A stretch of 64,000 nt of DNA from Lepidodermella squamata (Eukaryota > Animalia > Gastrotricha): assembly GCA_047495785.1 (NCBI GenBank), contig JBLDXI010000010.1:1364001-1428000 (forward strand), given 5' to 3'. The position numbers and the translations under genes are program-made. The notes under the pieces were generated by a model, which was given only the letters and a program-made list of their open reading frames with translations, was not told the origin of the DNA and ran no database searches. The stretch's first letter is position 1; the number at the start of each line of letters is the position of its first letter. Below are positions 3,301 through 47,060 of the stretch, piece after piece.

Positions 3301-5525
3301 CGATCGATTATAAACACCTTGTACTGATCATCGTTCACGTAGATTTCATCGGGAGCGATTGCAGGAGCTAGCGATGAGATGGGTTGCTGTTTGTTGTCAA
3401 AAGGCATCATATCTGAGTACCACTTTTCTCCTTGAAGTCTCACGCTGCCGTAGAATACCAAATCGTCACTGGCCCATAGAGTCAATATCACGGCTTTATC
3501 GTCAACAGCTGGAATCCACTCCTCGCCCTGTTGAGCAATCTCGATAAACTCTCTTGTTCGATCAGTGATTACTGCTCCAAAGACGCTGTTCACTTCGTAG
3601 TAGCCCCGTGGCACGGCTACTATCAGCGCGCCTTGTACCAGAGCGAGGCCAAAAATAGGCGAGTCGGGGTATGAAGTAGAACCTAGATCAATGGTTGTGT
3701 ATTTCGTTTCGCCATTATTTCCACTCAGGGCTCTAACTTTGCGCCCAACTTGGAAATACACCAGACCTAGAAAGTCGCTCTCGACCCCGCTGAGCCAACC
3801 TGCGAATTCCCCAGTGAAGTTGAGATCAGCACCACTGACGTTCCACTGAAAGCCATCTGGGCCGATAGGAATTGCGTGGAACAGTATTCCAGTGTCAGGA
3901 TGGTAACTTTTAGTGAAGATAGTGCTCATTCTTTCTGAAATGAATGGCTGAGCAAACTGACGACCTTTTTCTGCGTAAACCTCTCGTTTTTCAGTTAAAT
4001 TCAGGCTAGACTCGTCTAGCACCCATAGCATTGCATTTCCCCGACCATTTTCACGATTCATAACATAAATCTTTGAGTTCAAAATCAGCGGCTCCCACAA
4101 TGGTTCTCCATTCCATTCGGGTAGGTTAGTCTTGCCCATGAGATAGAATGAGTTGAAAGACCCCGAGTAGCTAACATCTCGATACCTTGAATGAGTCGAA
4201 TCTCCGCCCGAATTTGTCCATGGCAGTGACCATGTAACTGGGTCACTTCCTTGGGTAGTAGATTGCGTAATCGGAGCAGTAGTTGGCAAGATAGGATCTC
4301 CGCCAAACAGGTCGTACTTCATTAACTTGCCATTAGGACTGTCGACCAGGTAAACGTAGTCTCTGTCTACGGCGATGGATGAGTAAGTTACATCCGTACC
4401 AGCATCTTCGACTGAATAAAAAAGCTGGGTTGACTTTTCAATCGCAGCAAATCCACCAGGTATCATTGTTACGATGTAGTCCCGAGTTACGATCGGACCA
4501 TTCCTTGCCTTCAAATAAGGAGAGTCGATTGTTTCGAGGAGCGTTGCAGTTTCTCGATCTAGTTTCAAGATATCGTCGCGTGAGATGACGTAGATCCCTT
4601 CTGGGGTAACAGCCGGGCTGAATGTCCGGAAATCTGATACTGATGCTGGAATCTTTTGGGAAAGGACCGAGCTAGTTTTGTTTGTAAATGCGTGCTGTAT
4701 ATCTGTTGAGTTAACACTCCATAAAATAGATACGACGATCTCGTCATCCCCAGCCGGCTCCCATGGAAGCCCTATCTGACAGGCGCCACAATGCCAGGAA
4801 TGAAAGTTCTGAATAATTACTTCCCCTGTCTCAGGGTCGATTTCAGCGAAAGCACCACATGAGGATACAACCAAACTGCCGCCTATCAACGCGACACCAT
4901 AGATGCCAGTGTCGTAATCCTTATTAAGCTCGATGCGTCCCGATCTCATCTTTAAACTCAAATCGGCATAATTGAGCGCCAATAATTCGTGACCCATTTC
5001 GTTGTAAACAGCTGATAAATCATCATAAGGCAGAGGTCCAAATGTGCTGTAGAATTTATCAGAATCATCAGTCAAAGGCTTGGTTATACCCTTTGTTACA
5101 TCACTTGTATGACAACTGTGGAGTAGCACTCCGGTTAAAGGACTGTAGCTTCTGGCAAAAAGTAGGCCTTGTTCAGCGGAAATCGTTGGCTGAGTACATT
5201 TTCTGTTCACATCGAACGTGTAAAAGGTGGTGGTTTGAAGCAACTCAAGGTTGGTCTCGTTCAATACCCAGATTTGACCTTCGTCTTGTGATACGATGAA
5301 AATCTTGCCGTCGAATAGCAATGGCTCCCATAACACAGTTCGGATAGAGTGCTTTTCCAGCGCTGCCTCAGCAACTAATTTAGGTTCTGTCAGGCTCGAA
5401 GGCGATGAGAAGTCTCGATAACGGGAATGGCTGTGATCACCGCCAGTATTAACCCATGGTAAGTAAGTGGCTGTAGATATTTCAAGGTAGCTGCATAAGG
5501 CAAGTATTAAGAAGAGCCACTTCAT
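378..5525 (-). CDS. Secreted 1715-aa protein with four complete and one truncated PQQ-like beta-propeller units
   Basis: Intronless ORF with signal peptide MKWLFLILALCSYLEISTA. The ~400-aa unit recurs about every 1.2 kb, each copy opening with W-x-N-x-G-G-[DN]-x-x-H-[ST]-R-Y followed by (W/H/F)EPL and QPF/QPT. Thr-rich linkers separate the units. Confidence 0.8.
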   Translation of the reverse strand: MKWLFLILALCSYLEISTATYLPWVNTGGDHSHSRYRDFSSPSSLTEPKLVAEAALEKHSIRTVLWEPLLFDGKIFIVSQDEGQIWVLNETNLELLQTTTFYTFDVNRKCTQPTISAEQGLLFARSYSPLTGVLLHSCHTSDVTKGITKPLTDDSDKFYSTFGPLPYDDLSAVYNEMGHELLALNYADLSLKMRSGRIELNKDYDTGIYGVALIGGSLVVSSCGAFAEIDPETGEVIIQNFHSWHCGACQIGLPWEPAGDDEIVVSILWSVNSTDIQHAFTNKTSSVLSQKIPASVSDFRTFSPAVTPEGIYVISRDDILKLDRETATLLETIDSPYLKARNGPIVTRDYIVTMIPGGFAAIEKSTQLFYSVEDAGTDVTYSSIAVDRDYVYLVDSPNGKLMKYDLFGGDPILPTTAPITQSTTQGSDPVTWSLPWTNSGGDSTHSRYRDVSYSGSFNSFYLMGKTNLPEWNGEPLWEPLILNSKIYVMNRENGRGNAMLWVLDESSLNLTEKREVYAEKGRQFAQPFISERMSTIFTKSYHPDTGILFHAIPIGPDGFQWNVSGADLNFTGEFAGWLSGVESDFLGLVYFQVGRKVRALSGNNGETKYTTIDLGSTSYPDSPIFGLALVQGALIVAVPRGYYEVNSVFGAVITDRTREFIEIAQQGEEWIPAVDDKAVILTLWASDDLVFYGSVRLQGEKWYSDMMPFDNKQQPISSLAPAIAPDEIYVNDDQYKVFIIDRKLGVGIDDVAFGGHRVLSAPIVTKDFIFVMIPGGVAAYNKTSKQMFYVDTAMDQNSRDSFFVINSDYVLIADSISGAVAKYGFFETEIDPTTTIAQATTAHTKPNGDDWLNSGGDHGHTRYRNFSIDPSCNSVQLLESINFDYEPWEPLLYRNSIYLVQKHGFSIWVYLAEDLSFSKKVSYDTSSNVSFSQPFISERYNMIFLKAFNPETGVFTFKAFDAYYLYEKWEVTTMDLPAFNSSMELYGQFGDAVNENLGLVYFRIGNKVRCLEIQTGRTEFTTDDVIDSGTLFAITLAPDASVLFASVPGGVVTIDPYTGKILETNLADGAGPGYEWQVSIDGISGIAEVWYGSGLISWQAFNRIEALATSPHVFLGPTRAGDPAIAKEGLYVVTLNTISVFDRNRTMAMMEEYPLGRVDPQSGPIVTDNFIFLITKNGFAGVNRNTKEVFQSSFTTDPTRTHLVLSHDYIYVIDGGGEMSKYTLEYDPIIPTKSTSTTPRPFQTNFDWLNSGGNNGHTRYLNFSSPAGMNSFTGVAKHKLTNGTSILLHEPLILGDQIFVMSRVDATIWIFEKKYLHKQLEWQFNCPFEGCLFSQPFASKAYNYIFTKSYHLETGVIFHAIRANGLVAEWDTQIDLPETEDQNFERLPGVVSDSNGLVYFLAHRRVHALKITDGAYVFKSQELVSSTSDINVMGLALMNDDTLIISVNKGYCTLNATNGNMDEHCVIGDRLYNGYEWQPVSDDAAFVFVLWPSDDEVAFNYNEVNGPKWRSQSVNIGSDYRAATAALSPDGVVIAQDDSFVTLDRFEGSIKSYMGLRQYHPNNGPIVNRNSIFSIISGGIVGIYNDAGSDRFRPFAITDAISEDVTDSYLVMDDESLYTVDSQKGDITRVVLDNFTPYSKTEEWAAWGGDPGHSRYRDLTLQNVANAFILAYSTDIINATPGSGFFEPLVYNGQIYLMERSKGYAWKYATDLLTP

Positions 5526-25123: not shown

Positions 25124-26340
25124 ATGGCACTTGATATGCTGCGTTCTTCATTGTATGACCCTCTTCAATTGTTTGTACGCTGCCCTGGAAATGAAAGTTT
25201 CTTCTGTGAATTGGCCAATTCTGCTTCAATCAAGACACGCATGCCGAATCTGCTTGACAATCAAGATGCTGCTGATAACGAAACAGAAGACGACTACGAT
25301 GGGCCATACATCCCGGATGATGATTTGGGCCTAATAATCGGAGGCTTCCCACACTCGCAGGGGAGCTATGCGATTTTGACTGGCTTCGCGTTTTGCACAG
25401 TGGTGGTGATTCTTCTCTTCATTGATTACATTCGCTTCATGAGAGAACGAGGTGTCTTCGGACCGAAGGCTGAAGGCGTAAGAGCTCGGCGCAATCAGAG
25501 AATGTTTCCACAAGCTTCGACCCCAAGTGACGAGTAAGTCTATTAATTTAACAATTTTTCATGTCAATCTTACATATGATTTCAAGGTCAGAGTCGGAAT
25601 CCCCTGACAATCGGGAGCAGTCTATTGTTGGAGAAAAAGCCCTCCAGTCTTCGCCTCTACACCCCATGTACCAGGGATTAGAAGGTCTGGAAATGCCAAG
25701 TGTTGAACCCTCGCAATCTAGTGCGCCCACTAAGGCTCCTAGCATTGTTGAATCTGTCAGTAGTCCGGTTGCTGAAACAATTCTCTCAACTCATGACAGT
25801 GAGGTTGGCGAGATGAGACCTGCTCGTAGGCGGAGATCAGTCAAAAGCCGGAGAAATAGCATGATGCTTTACAGAGGAAGACGTCCTTCACTGGCTATCA
25901 AAGTTCAAACCCGCGCGAAACTCAATTCAAATATTGGCAACTCCGTAATTTCCGAGATTGCAATCAATGAGGATCGCCCTGACATTGAAGCTAAACCAGA
26001 AACAGAAGGCAACCCTACTTCTAACGAGCCAGAATCAGCCGAAAAGACTGAGGAGATGAAGAAGGAAGACCAAAGCGAAACAAAAGCCTCTGGCACTCCG
26101 AATCTAGTACCCGAGAAAAGTTTCGATGTAGATGACCCTGACAACTGGACCCTTCCCGAACCTGAAAGCACGTCCTCGGTCGAGCCGCTGAAAAAGTATG
26201 AGCAAGTCAAGAAGCCTATCATAAGGAAGAAACAAGAGGCTGAGAGGAGTTCCCCAACATTTCGCCGTCCGAAAATGTTACTAAGCTTCCTTGGCAGTGG
26301 GCTTAGTCGCATCAATGAAAACAGATCCGGAAATAACTGA
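25124..26340 (+). CDS. TM-DY family member I (2 exons), paralog of C
   Basis: YAILTGFAFCTVVVILLFI-DYIRFMRERGVFG; intron 25534-25586 in the same phase and region as in C; near-identical C-terminus ending RSGNN*. Confidence 0.85.
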
Positions 26341-26689
26341 ATGACATCATTCAATCTTATGCTATAATTCGTTTTAGTAAACGATGTTTGATAGGATGCA
26401 ATTTAGAATAAAAATGTTGCGTGGTAATTATTCAATCATCCCAGATTATATTTTTTTACGTTCAACCTGCGATTTCTGAGACACTTCGCAGTAAAAACTG
26501 TTCGAGTTATGACAGAGGTAACTGAATTTATCGAGGATTCATCAGCCAGTGTGGTTCTGGTGATAGGCTCAGCAATGCTGGCCTTTCTTCTCTGTGTTCT
26601 AATTGTCGACTACCATTGTAGTCCGGCTTTGCAGGGTCAAAGTCCATTTTATTCATCATGTGTGTTTTTATCGTTTATATAATGTGCCA

Positions 26690-26721
26690 CTGGTGGTGCG
26701 GTCGTGAGGTGGCGAGGTGGT
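26690..26721 (+). repeat. Left subterminal GGT(G/C)GTG-type tandem block of the transposon
   Basis: ctggtggtgcggtcgtgaggtggcgaggtggt; first 21 nt match the reverse complement of 29901-29921 at 20/21. Confidence 0.8.
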
Positions 26722-26983
26722 ATTTTTTTGTACTCTTGCCTCACTGTTGTCAAATGATTTGCCCCATTTATGCACAATAATAATCGCGCCTTGCCGTATG
26801 TGTACCATAAAAGTCCGCCTCACATTCATACTGACCTGAGCTATCGCAAATGATAATGGGCTTTTATAATCAAAACAACGCGTCTTCTAATTACCCCTGA
26901 TGTGACACAAAAAGCAGTTGCGACGACAGGAATACGATATATATGATATAAAATGGGTAAACTGTGTGTTTTCGTTTTGTAAA

Positions 26984-28954
26984 ATGCCCGCTGCTTACAG
27001 TTTTGAGGTGAGCGTTGACTTGGACTCGATAAAGCACCGTTTGGAGCGGATGCCAGCTTCGATTACTGATGTGCAGATTCGAACTCGTAGAGCGCGAGCT
27101 GAATTGGCGCAGACTCTTGCTTTGAAGACGCTACCTTCTACATGGCCATTTTCGCAGATAATGAATGGGGCCATTATGAAATCGGCCAAATTAACCATCG
27201 AGTATGATGACATTGGGGTTGTGGAAATCGAAGTACCCAGCGAAAAGCCAGCTAAATCTAGGGAAAGCGCAAACAATCGTGCTAAAAGGTTATAGAAATT
27301 GTCAAGTTATCGAATTTTATTAAATATTTTTTACTCTAGTCTCGTGATTCTGGGATTGCGTTACGGAATTAACGCCAGCAAGTTGCTAGCAATGCGTCGT
27401 TCCATTGGTTTCGAGTCAGTGTCAAAAGATTTATTCTATAAAGTTAGGAACGAGCTGGCTGTTTTGCACCCTATAAGCACGATAAGCGACGGAAAGGCGG
27501 CTTTCCGATCGGTATTTTCGCTTGCCAGTACTTGGGCCCGTAAAGGTGAGTTGAAACCGTCGGTCACTAACGACATTCGACTCCAGGTATAAATAAATTA
27601 AAATTCGAGGTAGAATTGAAACTTTATAAGTAACTGTTTAAGGTGGATGGGATGGCGAGCCGGACGAATTACGCTGACCCCTTTGTCACCGCCTATGTCT
27701 GTGTGGCGAGCAGGAAAAGGAAAGCCGGGATCGATAATGAAGACCAATTGGCTGTCTATAATGATAACGAGTCAGCGAGTAATTTTCGAGAATATTTACA
27801 ACCCCCTGTCGACGAGCTTGTAAAACTGGTCGAGCAAGGCATAACAGTCGACGGAAAAAGCTACAGTTTCAGACTGCTGACCTGCTGTGATTACCCGGCG
27901 CTGGTAAAAATATTTGGCTGTGGTCATCAGTCGAGTGAAAATCGTTGTGTTATTTGCGAGATGAGCGTCCGAAACCCAACTTTGCCAGCTAAAAGACGCA
28001 AGTTCGATGAATATTCGGCCGAAATGGCTGGGAAGCTGGGGTGGTCGGAAGATTTCGGGCCTATGATTCGGCTAAGCGAGGACAAATTGCTGATAATACC
28101 GGACTTCTTCCATCTTCAAGTCAATATTGCGAAACCACTGATTACCCAGGTTAGCATAGCAAGCGGAAAACTCTTCGAAAAGACATTTCATCCGAAAAAT
28201 AACTTTAGGTTCTCGGAAAGTTGAGAGCGTTCAGTCAACGCGAAGCAATCAAAAAAGTCATCGAATTCTTGAAGATTGGGTCGAAATACAAATCATCAGC
28301 GGCTTCTTCAAGACGGATCAAGCGAACTCCGAAAAACTCGAAGCTGTCTATTGACGTCCGCCGAACTTTGAAGGGGAAAGTCAAAGTCAGCATTAAAAAT
28401 TCGAATCACTACGGCGTTGTTCAGGTAGAATTGTGGTAGAGTGAAAATAAAACTTAATTTTGGATTTAAAATTTCAGGCATTCAAGCGATTTACTGAACA
28501 TATGAGCCAAAATTCGTTGACTGATGCGTTTTTCTTGCCAAAAAATTGGCAGAGAAAGAAAGTTTTCGGAAAAGTGAAGTCATCTGCCCGAATCAAAGAA
28601 AACGACTTTCTTACTTCTTTAGCCGGTCTTCGGAAGCTTTGCATCGCATCATGTGCCGCGTTTGACGATATCAAGGAAAATCGGAAAAAAGGAAAGGGCA
28701 AGTTCTTCATGCCGCGTTATGCATCGCTCTGGAAGACGCATGTTGGTCCTGTCACGTCATACGCACATCTCCTTTCGAGCCACACATACGAGCTGTTGAA
28801 ACGAAATATTAATCTGGCCGCTTTGTCCGCTGAAAGCATCGAACTACTCATCAAAGAGCTGCGCGCAACAGTTAGCAGTCAAACTTCTAATTTCTGGCCG
28901 TTGTCTTCTCAGCTCATGAGAATTCAGAACATGAAAGACAATCTGAAAATTTGA
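26984..28954 (+). CDS. RAG1/Transib-like DDE transposase, 5 exons, 583 aa
   Basis: Exons 26984-27288, 27340-27586, 27643-28149, 28209-28424, 28478-28954 with GT-AG introns total 1752 nt and give an open frame. Motifs: LQVDGM, CCDYPALVKIFG...CVIC, IPDFFHL, YAHLLSSH...SAESIE. Confidence 0.8.
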
Positions 28955-29088
28955 TACTTCAATTTTGTCAGCTTTACTTCTCATTTCAAGTTTTAATTTT
29001 TAAAAGTAAAATTCGAAAATGTAGAAAGAATGTTTTTTATTCAGCCTCTACTCTTGAACTCATCATCATCAGATAACACGGCAAAATA

Positions 29089-29819
29089 TCATCTTTTCGT
29101 GTACACATACTCATCTCGAGCTCGATCGAAATGCAATTCATATTTATCTTGTGCGGACCAGACGAAAGAAAAAAGCCCGGCTCGGCAGAGCTCATCGAGT
29201 TTCGAAATTTGCCGGCAGATTGCGTTTTGGCTTCTGCCAAGTTCAGCATCAAGGTTTTTATCGGACAGAGTAATCCGCATCCAGAATTTTAATAAGCTTT
29301 TGGGAGCAGTCGCCAATTTACCGCGTTTCGTGTAGAAGGCGAACACATGTCGCAATCGATTCCGGTCGCTAAAGGTCCACTCAACGCGTGAATTCGCGGC
29401 ATGAACTATATAAATTCGGACTATTTAGGACTCTCAGTGTCGAGCATTTCCAGATACTAACCTTTGTCAAACCGCTTTGACACCGCCCTGATGTAGTTCC
29501 AAGAGCCATAACTTGCCGTAGAAACCGAAGAGTCGAGCGTTGTATCGCTGATTTCGATGGGCTCGATTTGCTCGGCTTGATGCGCGCCTGCTTGTTCCTG
29601 CTGTCCAAATTCCTCATGAAGAAACGATTCATCGCCTTCATTTTCCGATAAACCGGTTTCAGACTGCTGATTATTTTTCGATTTGGCGAACATTGATCGA
29701 ATATCGGCCTGTTTTTCAAAGCGATTGTGCTGTTGTTGCTGATGATGAGCAGCTCTGCGCTCACTCCTGCGCTGCCTTTTTCGCCGATTGCGTGATCGCG
29801 ATTTCGCAGTTTCACTCAT
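29089..29819 (-). CDS. Transposon accessory protein, 224 aa: basic N-terminus and Myb/SANT-like helix-turn-helix C-terminus (2 exons)
   Basis: Exons 29819-29462 and 29405-29089 (intron 29461-29406, GTTAG...TATAG). Arg/Lys-rich NLS-like start; VEWTFSDRNRLRHVF...LDAELGRSQNAICRQISKL. Confidence 0.65.
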
Positions 29820-29889
29820 TTTATTCAGATGAATTTCGCAAATAGCTCGAAAAACGAATGGCTTTACGACTGATAAAAATAACAAGTGA

Positions 29890-29921
29890 ACGACTGCACG
29901 ACCTCACCACCGCACCACCAG
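29890..29921 (-). repeat. Right subterminal block, inverted copy of 26690-26721
   Basis: acgactgcacgacctcaccaccgcaccaccag, reverse complement ctggtggtgcggtggtgaggtcgtgcagtcgt. Confidence 0.8.
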
Positions 29922-31207
29922 CGCGCATAGCTAAACATAAGACTACTACACACATGATATATAGCAATAATAATTGCACATGAATCATCTAGGTCACTCT
30001 GCAAAACCCGGACTTGTATGACGCAAAACATGTGAGACAAACGCTGAACCCATTTTTCAAAACAATTTTGTTTTTTCCCAGATGCGTGCTGCTGGTTTCT
30101 TTGGGGGTGAAATCGACTTATTCGCTCGGCGCAAGAGGAAAACGAAATCGTTATCAACATCTCGCACGATGTCAAGCAACTACGGAGCTACTTCGCCAAT
30201 CCATGAAGTTGCTACCGACTACTCCCTGCAGGTCAGATCGGTTCAATCGCGGGAGGACATTCTTCTAGACGAAGAAACAGGGCTGGAACTTCAAATGCCT
30301 AGTATTACACCATTCAAACATGAAGAAATGGCAGTATGCATTCCTCATTCGGTGTCGGAGATTCTACCAGCCGTTGGGAAGAAAACGCATGAGAAAATTC
30401 GGTATAATTCATCTCTGGACCTTGGCAAAAGGTCATTGCCAAGCAAGACTCCATGGGAACCTATTAAGGATAACCCAGAAACACCTTTCCGACTCCGAGC
30501 TGATACACAAACATTCATTGATCTGAAGGAAATGTCCGGAACGAGGCCTCGAAGTAAATCGATAACTGTAATGCAGCGTAGCATCCAGCCAGATCGACCT
30601 TCAGCAAGCCAACGCCCTGCGAGAGAAACATCATCGCGGGAGCTATTGAAAGGCGCCAGAGCGTTTGCAGCGATCAGAGCCGAAAGACGTCTTATCAATC
30701 GTCGAAGGGAGAATAATGGGGAAACGCCTGATAATTATGATCTTCTTCAAAACTCTGCAATGTTTCTCACACCATTCGGCCGCCTGATGCGAAATGTGAA
30801 TATGAAGATGGCATAATCCTTGCTGCTTTGTTGGGCTCTTTTACCGGGCTACAACGCTTCTCCTGAGAAAGCTGTACATGATGATGAATGACTCTAGTTT
30901 CAACTTCGAAAGTTCTAAGCTATTGATATTTAAGCAGTGCGCGAAGGGATACGATACCCCTCATCTCTACATCTCTAAACCGCACGTTCCCTTTGTTAAG
31001 TTAAATCAATGATGTGGAAATGAAAATAAAGGGCGAATGGGGAATCCCGATCTAGCCTATTTTTCTGTGTAGAATTCCTCAAATATGAAAACTACTAAAC
31101 CAGGTCTAGACAAGGAAATTTCAGATTTATTCCGTGTAAGCAACCACTGCGGAATGTTAATGAAGGCGATAGCATTTGACTAGTAAATCTTAACGACTAA
31201 CAGAGCA

Positions 31208-45387: not shown

Positions 45388-47060
45388 TTACTGCTGCTGC
45401 TGACCGCATGGACCGGGGCCAGAGCATGGGGCTGGAGCGCAGGGAGAGGGGCCAGTGAACGATGGGCGGAAGGTTTGGCAGACGCCGTTGGCGCCAGGCT
45501 CTCCCTTGCAACCGACCGGGCCTGGTTCGCCAGGGCGGCCAGGTTGGCCGGGTTGGCCGGGGAATCCAGACTGGCCAGGAGGGCCCTGAGGTCCAGGTGG
45601 TCCTGGGCGGCCTGCGATCTGGTCGACGCGAGGGGTCTGACCGGGCATGCCCTGAGGGCCAGGGGCGCCAGGTGGGCCGCGAAGGCCAGGCATACCTGGA
45701 TCACCCTTGCAGCCAGGCTCACCAACACGGCCTTGGAGACCAGGACCGCCGGGCATGCCAGGTGGGCCAGGTGGGCCAGGAGGTCCAGGTGGGCCGGGCG
45801 GGCAGTTGCAGACTGGCTGGACGACAGGCTGGATGACGGGCTGAGGCGCTGGCTCCGGGATATAGACAGGCTCAGGGGCTGGTGTCGGGGCTGGTTGACC
45901 GCACTGTGAGAAGAAAATTATAAAAATCTGAAGTAAAAAAACTTGGATTATCTTACGCCTGGAGGGCGGGTTGCGATCGGTCCACCGCAAGGCGATGCAG
46001 CCGGGTATGACGGGTATGACGGGTAGTAGTCGACCGGCGGCAGCTGGTACGGCGCTTGTGGCTGAGGCTGTGGGGCGACAGCAGCGTAGATGTAGGTGTC
46101 CCTCAGTGGTCCCTGAGCAATAGCCTCCGGGAAGCCAGAGCTGCCAGGGTAGCCTTGGTAAAGGCCATCCTGGGGGTACAGATCGCGCCATTCAACCTTA
46201 CCCATCGGCGCACCCTTGGCGTAGATCTCATCCAAATGTTCAACCTCGGGCGAGAGCTGCTTCTTCACCGACTCAGTGCTGTCGACGCGGAAGACCCAGC
46301 GACCAGTCGAGTTGACGTTCGAGGTGGTGGCAACCTGGTTGACTTGTTCAGAGCACGACTTGGGAACAGCGTAGAAGTTGACGCCATCACCAGCATCGAA
46401 ACCGACCTTAGCCGGGTAGCCGCCAAGGCCAGTGCAGCGATCACCACCGCTGGCAGTTCCGGCGACCCATTGCAAGTCGTGGTACAGGAAGATGACGTAG
46501 GCGTGCTCGCCATCGCTGGCCAGCGCGACCTGGAAGGTGTTGCGCGGGAACTTGTCCATAGCACGGTCGCCGCAGGTATCAGCGCCGAAGTATGAAACGT
46601 TGACCCAGGTGGCGATGTACAGCCACTCGGTGTTGAAATGCTCGGGCAGGATTGACTTGAGCTCACGGTCGGCCTTCTTCAGAAGCTCGGGATCAGTCGA
46701 CTGGCGGTAGTAGATCGAACCACCGATCGAGGCGTTGGTGTTGACGTCGGCCCAGAACGGCGAGATCATCGACTTGCGGATGTTGAGGGCACCGCAGTAC
46801 GGTGTGTAGTAGGCAATTCCGTCGTCGAACGAGATAGCGCCGTTGACGTTGAGGGTGACCTCGCGTTCGCGCTTGTCGAAGAACTTGAACGAATAGCCGT
46901 CGCGGATGAGCAGAGGCAGGGAGAAGGTGTCATCTCCACGGTTCAGCTCACCGTCTCCGACTTCCTTGCCGAAGGGGAAGAACTCCTCGAGGGGCACGCC
47001 GCCGAGCACGGACAGAGGCAGCAGAGCAGCCACAACAAACCACCTGGCTGTAAGTTCCAT
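45388..47060 (-). CDS. Secreted NIDO-domain / short cuticle-type collagen fusion protein (539 aa, 2 coding exons)
   Basis: Signal peptide; NIDO motifs ([47 protein letters not shown]). Phase-0 intron 45956-45904. Then CNC plus Gly-X-Y blocks of about 18 and 15 triplets and a Cys-rich tail. Confidence 0.85.

Follow-up and report, generated by a model that had tools for sequence, protein, structure and literature searches.

The window analysed here, a stretch of 64,000 nucleotides from the gastrotrich Lepidodermella squamata (contig JBLDXI010000010.1), holds at positions 26614-30020 a DNA transposon of 3407 bp, in which an open reading frame (ORF) for a transposase of 583 residues and a convergent gene for a protein of 224 residues lie within imperfect terminal inverted repeats (TIRs). 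A preliminary description of the locus, made from the letters of the window, had recognised an intact two-gene element with these borders, and the ORFs, the TIRs and the breakpoints of contigs assembled from sequencing reads agree with it. We consider it quite probable that the element is an autonomous, recently active cut-and-paste transposon from the CACTA-Mirage-Chapaev (CMC) side of the clade that is named CMCT when Transib is included. It constitutes a rare new family of a known clade and has no special kinship with the recombinase that assembles antibody genes.

When spliced by script, the five exons of the transposase gene (Table 1) yield 1752 nt and an ORF whose single stop codon stands at its end, as had been described, and the motifs quoted in that description are all present and in the stated order, that is, VDGM (D186), CCDYPAL (D267), RCVIC (C286/C289), PDFFH (H341), YAHLLSSH (H523/H528) and SAESIE (E544). 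They make up an arrangement of two aspartates and a glutamate (DDE; D186, D267 and E544) with a C(2)C motif (C286-x2-C289) and an H-x4-H motif (H523-x4-H528) between the second aspartate and the glutamate, which is conserved in homologues; by homology, C286, C289, H523 and H528 would form a zinc site. Sequence and fold searches used exon pieces, family profiles or a homologue, and the C-terminal third was read from a 5-row alignment, in which SYAHLL..H.Y and SAE.IE are kept in the homologues P0008 and P0009. The four predicted introns measure 51–59 nt, are all of GT..AG type with nematode-like acceptors (..TTTCAG, ..TTTAG), and are proposed on the grounds of ORF continuity, canonical splice sites and conservation.

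In the product of the second gene, the N-terminus is basic and resembles a nuclear localisation signal, the middle is acidic, and the C-terminal part is conserved. A contig from run X2, which was labelled RNA as a guess and has an RNA-like coverage pattern, joins 29405 to 29462, though with only 27 letters on its shorter side, and skips exactly 29406-29461, the predicted intron of 56 nt (GT..AG on the minus strand). Run X2 covers the second gene (depth 6–10) and the downstream host exons, and is near zero over the transposase exons despite the many copies. The reads support the intron of the second gene and none of the four in the transposase gene. Pfam gave no match for the 224-residue protein, and a language-model search (ESM Atlas) provided a weak lead, at 0.87, to Rap1/Myb clusters. 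Based on the conservation, the N-terminus and this lead, it is tempting to speculate that the protein is a nuclear, Myb-like helper that binds the ends of the element.

Table 1. Features of the transposon and its target site duplication (TSD), in window coordinates.
Feature	Positions	Strand	Remarks
Left TSD copy (2 bp, AC)	26612..26613	.	AC before CAT terminus; contig breaks at 26614
Left TIR (~26 nt, begins CATTGTAGTCCGG) with conserved subterminal blocks (ATCATGTGTGT; CTGGTGGTGCGGTCGTGAGGT)	26614..26725	+	
Transposase exon 1	26984..27288	+	Residues 1-101; no known domain; homologous in L001, L007
Transposase exon 2	27340..27586	+	Residues 102-184; comprises the pre-RNase H region and the beginning of beta1
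Transposase exon 3	27643..28149	+	Residues 185-353; D186, D267, C286/C289 (C-x2-C), H341; Pfam Transposase_21, E 1.8e-4
Transposase exon 4	28209..28424	+	Residues 354-425; basic linker; homologous in L001, L003, L007
Transposase exon 5	28478..28954	+	Residues 426-583; H523-x4-H528, E544
Second gene, 224 residues	29089..29819	-	Exons 29819-29462, 29405-29089; tail to tail with transposase gene
Right TIR with subterminal blocks (end ...CCGGACTTGTATG)	29895..30020	-	Contig breaks at 30020
Right TSD copy (2 bp, AC)	30021..30022	.	AC after ATG terminus
Subterminal blocks			Include GGTGGTGCGGT..GTGAGGT

The termini of the window copy are CAT...ATG, the left one reading CATTGTA, and conserved subterminal blocks reach ~110 nt inward from the imperfect TIR pair. 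AC stands on either side of this copy, and flanks of other copies were recovered from run X1 (the source-like sample, probably the one from which the window was assembled): two left flanks end in ..TA before CATTG, and one copy has a perfectly inverted right end (..GGACTACAATG), so that its right flank begins with TA.. after CAATG. Two other readings of the borders were rejected, that is, a 5-bp TSD TTGTA with GTCCGG termini, which appears Transib-like at first glance, since in contigs from other copies the common sequence extends as far as CATTG/CAATG, and a 3-bp TSD TGT because it breaks the host reading frame. A subterminal stretch of 29 nt (26693-26721, CTGGTGGTGCGGTCGTGAGGTGGCGAGGT) recurs in inverted orientation and with 86% identity beside the end of L011 (L011:1683-1711), a metagenome contig carrying a relative of the element. 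Since the proteins of the two elements are only ~40% identical, this conservation hints at a candidate protein-binding site. The window contains no further copies of the element, Rfam and tRNA scans of the window were empty, and direct repeats inside the element do not exceed the chance level.

Contigs assembled from run X1 end exactly at 26614 and 30020, and the k-mer depth in this run is 453–477 in the interior of the element, compared with 75–77 and 38–42 for the two haplotypes of the flanks. Moreover, a contig of depth 43, which equals the depth of the minor haplotype, connects 26613 to 30071 without the element. The contig breaks at the ends, the deep interior and the haplotype devoid of the insertion show that the element is present in multiple, near-identical copies, is insertion-polymorphic and has recently been mobile, with a target duplication of 2 bp. 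Over 2.66 kb, the collapsed interior contig from X1 differs from the window copy by five substitutions and one 7-bp indel: one coding difference is silent, one replaces an amino acid (F198 here, L in the majority), and the 7 bp are deleted upstream of the transposase ATG in the window copy. Differing flanks are present in both X1 and X2. The element had been described as potentially active and, given the near-identical multi-copy depth, the insertion-free haplotype and the varied flanks, it is probably still active.

The window copy splits a host coding exon (...CVLIVDY|AKH..., then a GT donor), with host flanks at 26509-26613 and 30023-30816. The two flank haplotypes (25510-26355) diverge by about 9%, with 59 differences over 631 nt, and have depths near 76 and 42, which suggests that the genome is very heterozygous or of 2:1 composition (e.g. 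triploid or hybrid). Both termini exhibit extra depth (971 at 26614-26645 and 782 at 29980-30020), and contigs leave the element at 26645/26646 and 29980. The likely source is deletion derivatives of the element, or else a sister family, with just the terminal 30–40 nt in common. In a biofilm metagenome (run X3), two contigs of 151 nt match exon 3 (27733-28048) with one difference each, so that the host, or at least the element, is present in a biofilm sampled from the environment.

When exon 3 was compared by phmmer with 1.84 billion cluster representatives, only seven proteins matched. Six of them, each an ORF about the size of an exon, belong to the family of the transposase (36–52% identity) and come from a small number of ENA and Logan metagenome assemblies; the remaining one, P0007, is a fragment that belongs to another family and is the only match from outside. 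A scan of JGI metagenomes with family peptide patterns yielded no relative. The family is thus very rare and, as the preliminary description had supposed, its branch is poorly sampled. In tblastn searches against fetched metagenome contigs, homologues align at 36–43% identity with E-values of 1e-49 to 1e-81, and by these scores the homology is well beyond chance. The alignments break at residues 101/102 and 354 in L001 and L007, that is, at predicted exon borders; the alignment with L003 likewise breaks at residue 354, and L003 has an intron at the position of the fourth one in the window. The 7.1-kb contig L007 carries a full-length transposase homologue (residues 7-583, ~40%) and, behind it in convergent orientation, a second-gene homologue (34%, as in L008), and L011 carries the transposase C-terminus and a convergent second-gene homologue (39%) with a shared intron position. 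Both genes are thus kept in L007 and L011 at 34–43% identity, and this layout, together with the exon borders and intron positions shared with the relatives, indicates that the convergent two-gene arrangement and the gene structure are family traits under selection. Two further ORFs adjoin the homologous element in L007 (1233-3167, minus strand, 644 residues; 4070-4576, plus strand, 168 residues); they have no Pfam match and may be genes of the host or belong to a longer element.

As for the fold of the enzyme, a model of exon 3 by itself was poor (pLDDT 62), and RAG1 was its top but weak match (Z 4.0–4.6). The homologue P0002, which has 36% identity to the window protein and spans the equivalent of exons 2 and 3 in a single ORF, was folded with a 20-row alignment and gave a model (pLDDT 75.5; pTM 0.75) with the order beta1-beta2-beta3-alpha1-beta4-alpha2, in which D70 closes beta1 and D155 comes immediately behind beta4, as is canonical for the first two catalytic residues. 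For this model (i) the first 45 Foldseek matches in the PDB are all RAG1, HzTransib or amphioxus RAG1L (E 2e-4 to 1e-2), (ii) VIA-align yields Z-scores of 8.5–10.0 for RAG1 (191–231 of 253 residues), 8.1–8.3 for BbRAGL and 6.7–7.4 for HzTransib, with the next unrelated structures at ~5.4–5.6, (iii) an exhaustive pass over 48,161 representatives leaves this order unchanged (P element transposase 4.9; Hermes 4.0), and (iv) the part equivalent to exon 2 aligns structurally to RAG1 from residue ~470 on. The models thus support a RAG1/Transib-type RNase H fold for the transposase family. The ESM Atlas search with the P0002 model, however, returned plant CACTA TNP2 with a TM-score of 0.69 (233 residues), RAG1 with 0.64–0.66, and unnamed fungal and rotifer clusters with 0.62–0.67, and no CMC transposase was found among the solved structures matched. 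Since the CACTA TNP2 models match equally well, the RAG1-type fold does not discriminate between the branches of the clade. Hence, the alignment with the RAG1 catalytic core put forward in the preliminary description stands insofar as the fold is of RAG1/Transib type and the zinc motifs are in order, but what it captures is a signature of the entire clade that fits CACTA TNP2 as well.

In the comparison of sequences, the only Pfam signal of any window piece is a weak match to Transposase_21, the TNP2 family of CACTA/En-Spm (E 1.8e-4), and family members add a second Transposase_21 match and a faint match to DUF1280. The RAG1 families of Pfam (RAG1_RNase_H, RAG1_ZnC2 and RAG1_ZnH2) were matched neither by single pieces nor by family profiles at E-values up to 10 and, with the same limit, the RAG1 and HzTransib chains among the PDB sequences were matched neither by exon 3 nor by three family profiles; RAG1 and HzTransib are thus top matches among solved structures but are reached by none of the sequence and profile searches of Pfam or the PDB. 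P0007 and its insect relatives give weak matches to Transposase_21 and DUF1258. When a family-only profile was compared by hhalign with the insect TNP2-like group, which itself has just weak Transposase_21 and DUF1258 matches, the probability was 94.8% (E 4.8e-8) over the stretch comprising alpha1, beta4, the second aspartate and C(2)C. Among the language-model neighbours of exon 3, clusters of RAG1 and of Transposase_21 are mixed with unnamed ones. Taken as sequence evidence, the relatives, the ends and the 2-bp TSD point to the CMC side.

All members of the CMCT clade have DDE, C(2)C and H(3-4)H in common, most have CA..TG termini, and their TSDs measure 2–5 bp (PMC12730594). The H-x4-H spacing, which the preliminary description had taken as a RAG/Transib marker, is thus covered by a clade-wide motif. 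Transib has a 5-bp TSD and a 38-bp TIR in which a spacer of 12/23 bp separates a CACAATG heptamer with invariant CAC from an A-rich nonamer (PMC1131882), whereas in the present element, whose ends are fixed by the contig breaks, AC is duplicated, the terminus reads CATTGTA, and no sequence resembling a nonamer stands at a distance of 12 or 23 bp. With Transib, RAG1 and ProtoRAG RAG1L the transposase shares an RNase H core after a pre-RNase H region, a zinc module past the second aspartate, the DDE order and H-x4-H, but it is shorter (583 residues) and has no match to them at the sequence level; nor is its partner a RAG2-like Kelch propeller as in ProtoRAG, being a protein of 224 residues with no Pfam match and a weak Myb lead. 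The short TSD (2–4 bp) and CA..TG termini of CMC type are both found here (2 bp; CAT..ATG), and the CAC..GTG ends characteristic of Chapaev, which has a 3–4 bp TSD, and typical also of CACTA (PMC4079192), are absent.

CACTA/En-Spm provides the sole Pfam family matched by window pieces, the best predicted-structure match and the D-x-P-A motif at the second aspartate, and is likewise a two-protein system, in which TNPA is an accessory protein binding DNA at subterminal repeats. Unlike CACTA/En-Spm, however, the element has CAT rather than CACTA termini, a TSD of 2 bp rather than the usual 3 bp, neither DUF4218 nor Transpos_assoc, and a convergent partner that is unrelated to TNPA as far as tested. 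Mirage, a CMC superfamily of Repbase first described in Caenorhabditis elegans, has a 2-bp TSD. Compared by description, Mirage and the present element share CA..TG ends, an animal host, nematode-like introns and a CMCT-type DDE enzyme that contains C(2)C and H(3-4)H; a two-gene layout with a convergent partner is not known to us from Mirage, and we presume, as a guess, that the nematode families DUF1280 and DUF1258 found as faint matches are linked to it. Two deep lineages have recently been described in fungi: the EnSpm-like ESTA, which has TA TSDs and was recognised only via HHpred similarity to RAG1 (PMC12730594), and CNEST, a new CMC lineage in Cryptococcus (PMC12810828). The TA duplications of ESTA resemble, by description, the three unpaired TA flanks of other copies in run X1, but ESTA often carries TET/JBP genes, which the window element lacks.

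The preliminary description had placed the element between RAG/Transib and CMC and had considered it relevant to how the V(D)J recombinase arose. That RAG1, BbRAGL and HzTransib are the best solved-structure matches, that H-x4-H occurs in RAG1, that RAG1 clusters are among the language-model neighbours, and that the family is too divergent for any Pfam assignment above threshold would be consistent with a lineage specifically allied with RAG1/Transib or intermediate between Transib and CMC. Yet RAG1 and Transib may lead the PDB lists merely since no CMC transposase turned up among the solved matches; CACTA TNP2 predicted models match as well or better; the RAG1 families and the RAG1/Transib chains are missed at E-values up to 10; the histidine spacing is common to the clade (PMC12730594); the TSD has 2 bp instead of 5, CAT replaces the invariant CAC, and the nonamer is absent (compare PMC1131882); and the partner gene is not RAG2-like. 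We thus found no specific affinity to RAG/Transib, the TSD, termini and sequence links being CMC-like, and regard such an alliance as distinctly improbable. Equally improbable in our view is the broader possibility of a separate deep CMCT lineage at the rank of a superfamily, perhaps branching nearer to Transib/RAG1 than the classical CMC groups do, with a 2-bp stagger and a Myb-like helper; if true, it would imply that RAG1-type cores were paired with other partners before or beside the pairing of RAG1 with RAG2.

The element could also be structurally intact but no longer autonomous, with a silent or inactive transposase and copies that are relics of a single burst. Such a state would be in line with the nearly blank transposase exons in run X2, a run with coverage of both the second gene and the host gene, and with the 7-bp deletion upstream of the ATG and the F198 of the window copy against L in the majority. 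It is, however, unlikely: the copies are ~99.5% or more identical, the other haplotype lacks the insertion, the flanks in X1 and X2 differ, all catalytic and zinc residues are kept, and low expression of a transposase in bulk RNA is usual for active elements. A domesticated, immobile pair of host genes has only the intact ORFs and second-gene expression in its favour, and is barely conceivable in view of the TIRs, the 2-bp duplication, the multi-copy depth, the several flanks and the presence within a host coding exon on one haplotype but not the other.

Several points weigh against our interpretation as an autonomous, recently active element of the CMC side. The transposase and its four introns have no RNA support (X2 depth about 0–1), and the function of the second gene is deduced solely from conservation and the weak Myb lead. 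The TSD is based on one paired copy (AC/AC, expected in 1 of 16 cases by chance) together with the unpaired flanks elsewhere, and the contig of the empty allele is exact at the left border only, the right border falling into a diverged intron. With regard to placement, the 21.2 bits of the Transposase_21 match fall short of the Pfam gathering score (28.6 bits); the structural model of good quality represents the homologue P0002 and is devoid of the C-terminal third, which bears H-x4-H and the glutamate; and the position within the clade is provisional.

If the element is indeed an autonomous cut-and-paste transposon of the CMC side, its mode of action can be outlined by homology. The 583-residue DDE transposase, with its zinc module inserted into the RNase H fold, would bind the CAT...ATG terminal repeats and the subterminal motifs, excise the element, and join the 3' ends to the target with a 2-bp stagger, the preferred target probably being TA, and AC in the present case. 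The 224-residue accessory protein, probably a nuclear Myb-like DNA-binding helper, would bring the transposase to the ends, comparable to TNPA of En/Spm or the Myb-like protein of Harbinger. The window copy landed in the host coding exon on one haplotype only.

Elsewhere in the window, a gene at 45391-47060 (minus strand) encodes a NIDO domain (E 1e-49) and a collagen triple helix (E 9e-18), and lies in a GC-rich region at 44–48 kb (52–53% GC).

Although the element by itself leaves the picture of the origin of RAG1 unchanged, a compact and intact two-gene element of 3.4 kb represents a practical candidate for biochemical and structural studies on the CMC side of the RAG1-type fold. To our knowledge, few animal CMC elements look active. 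The element could thus inform us on what sets a 2-bp as opposed to a 5-bp stagger of integration, and might possibly serve as a genetic tool.

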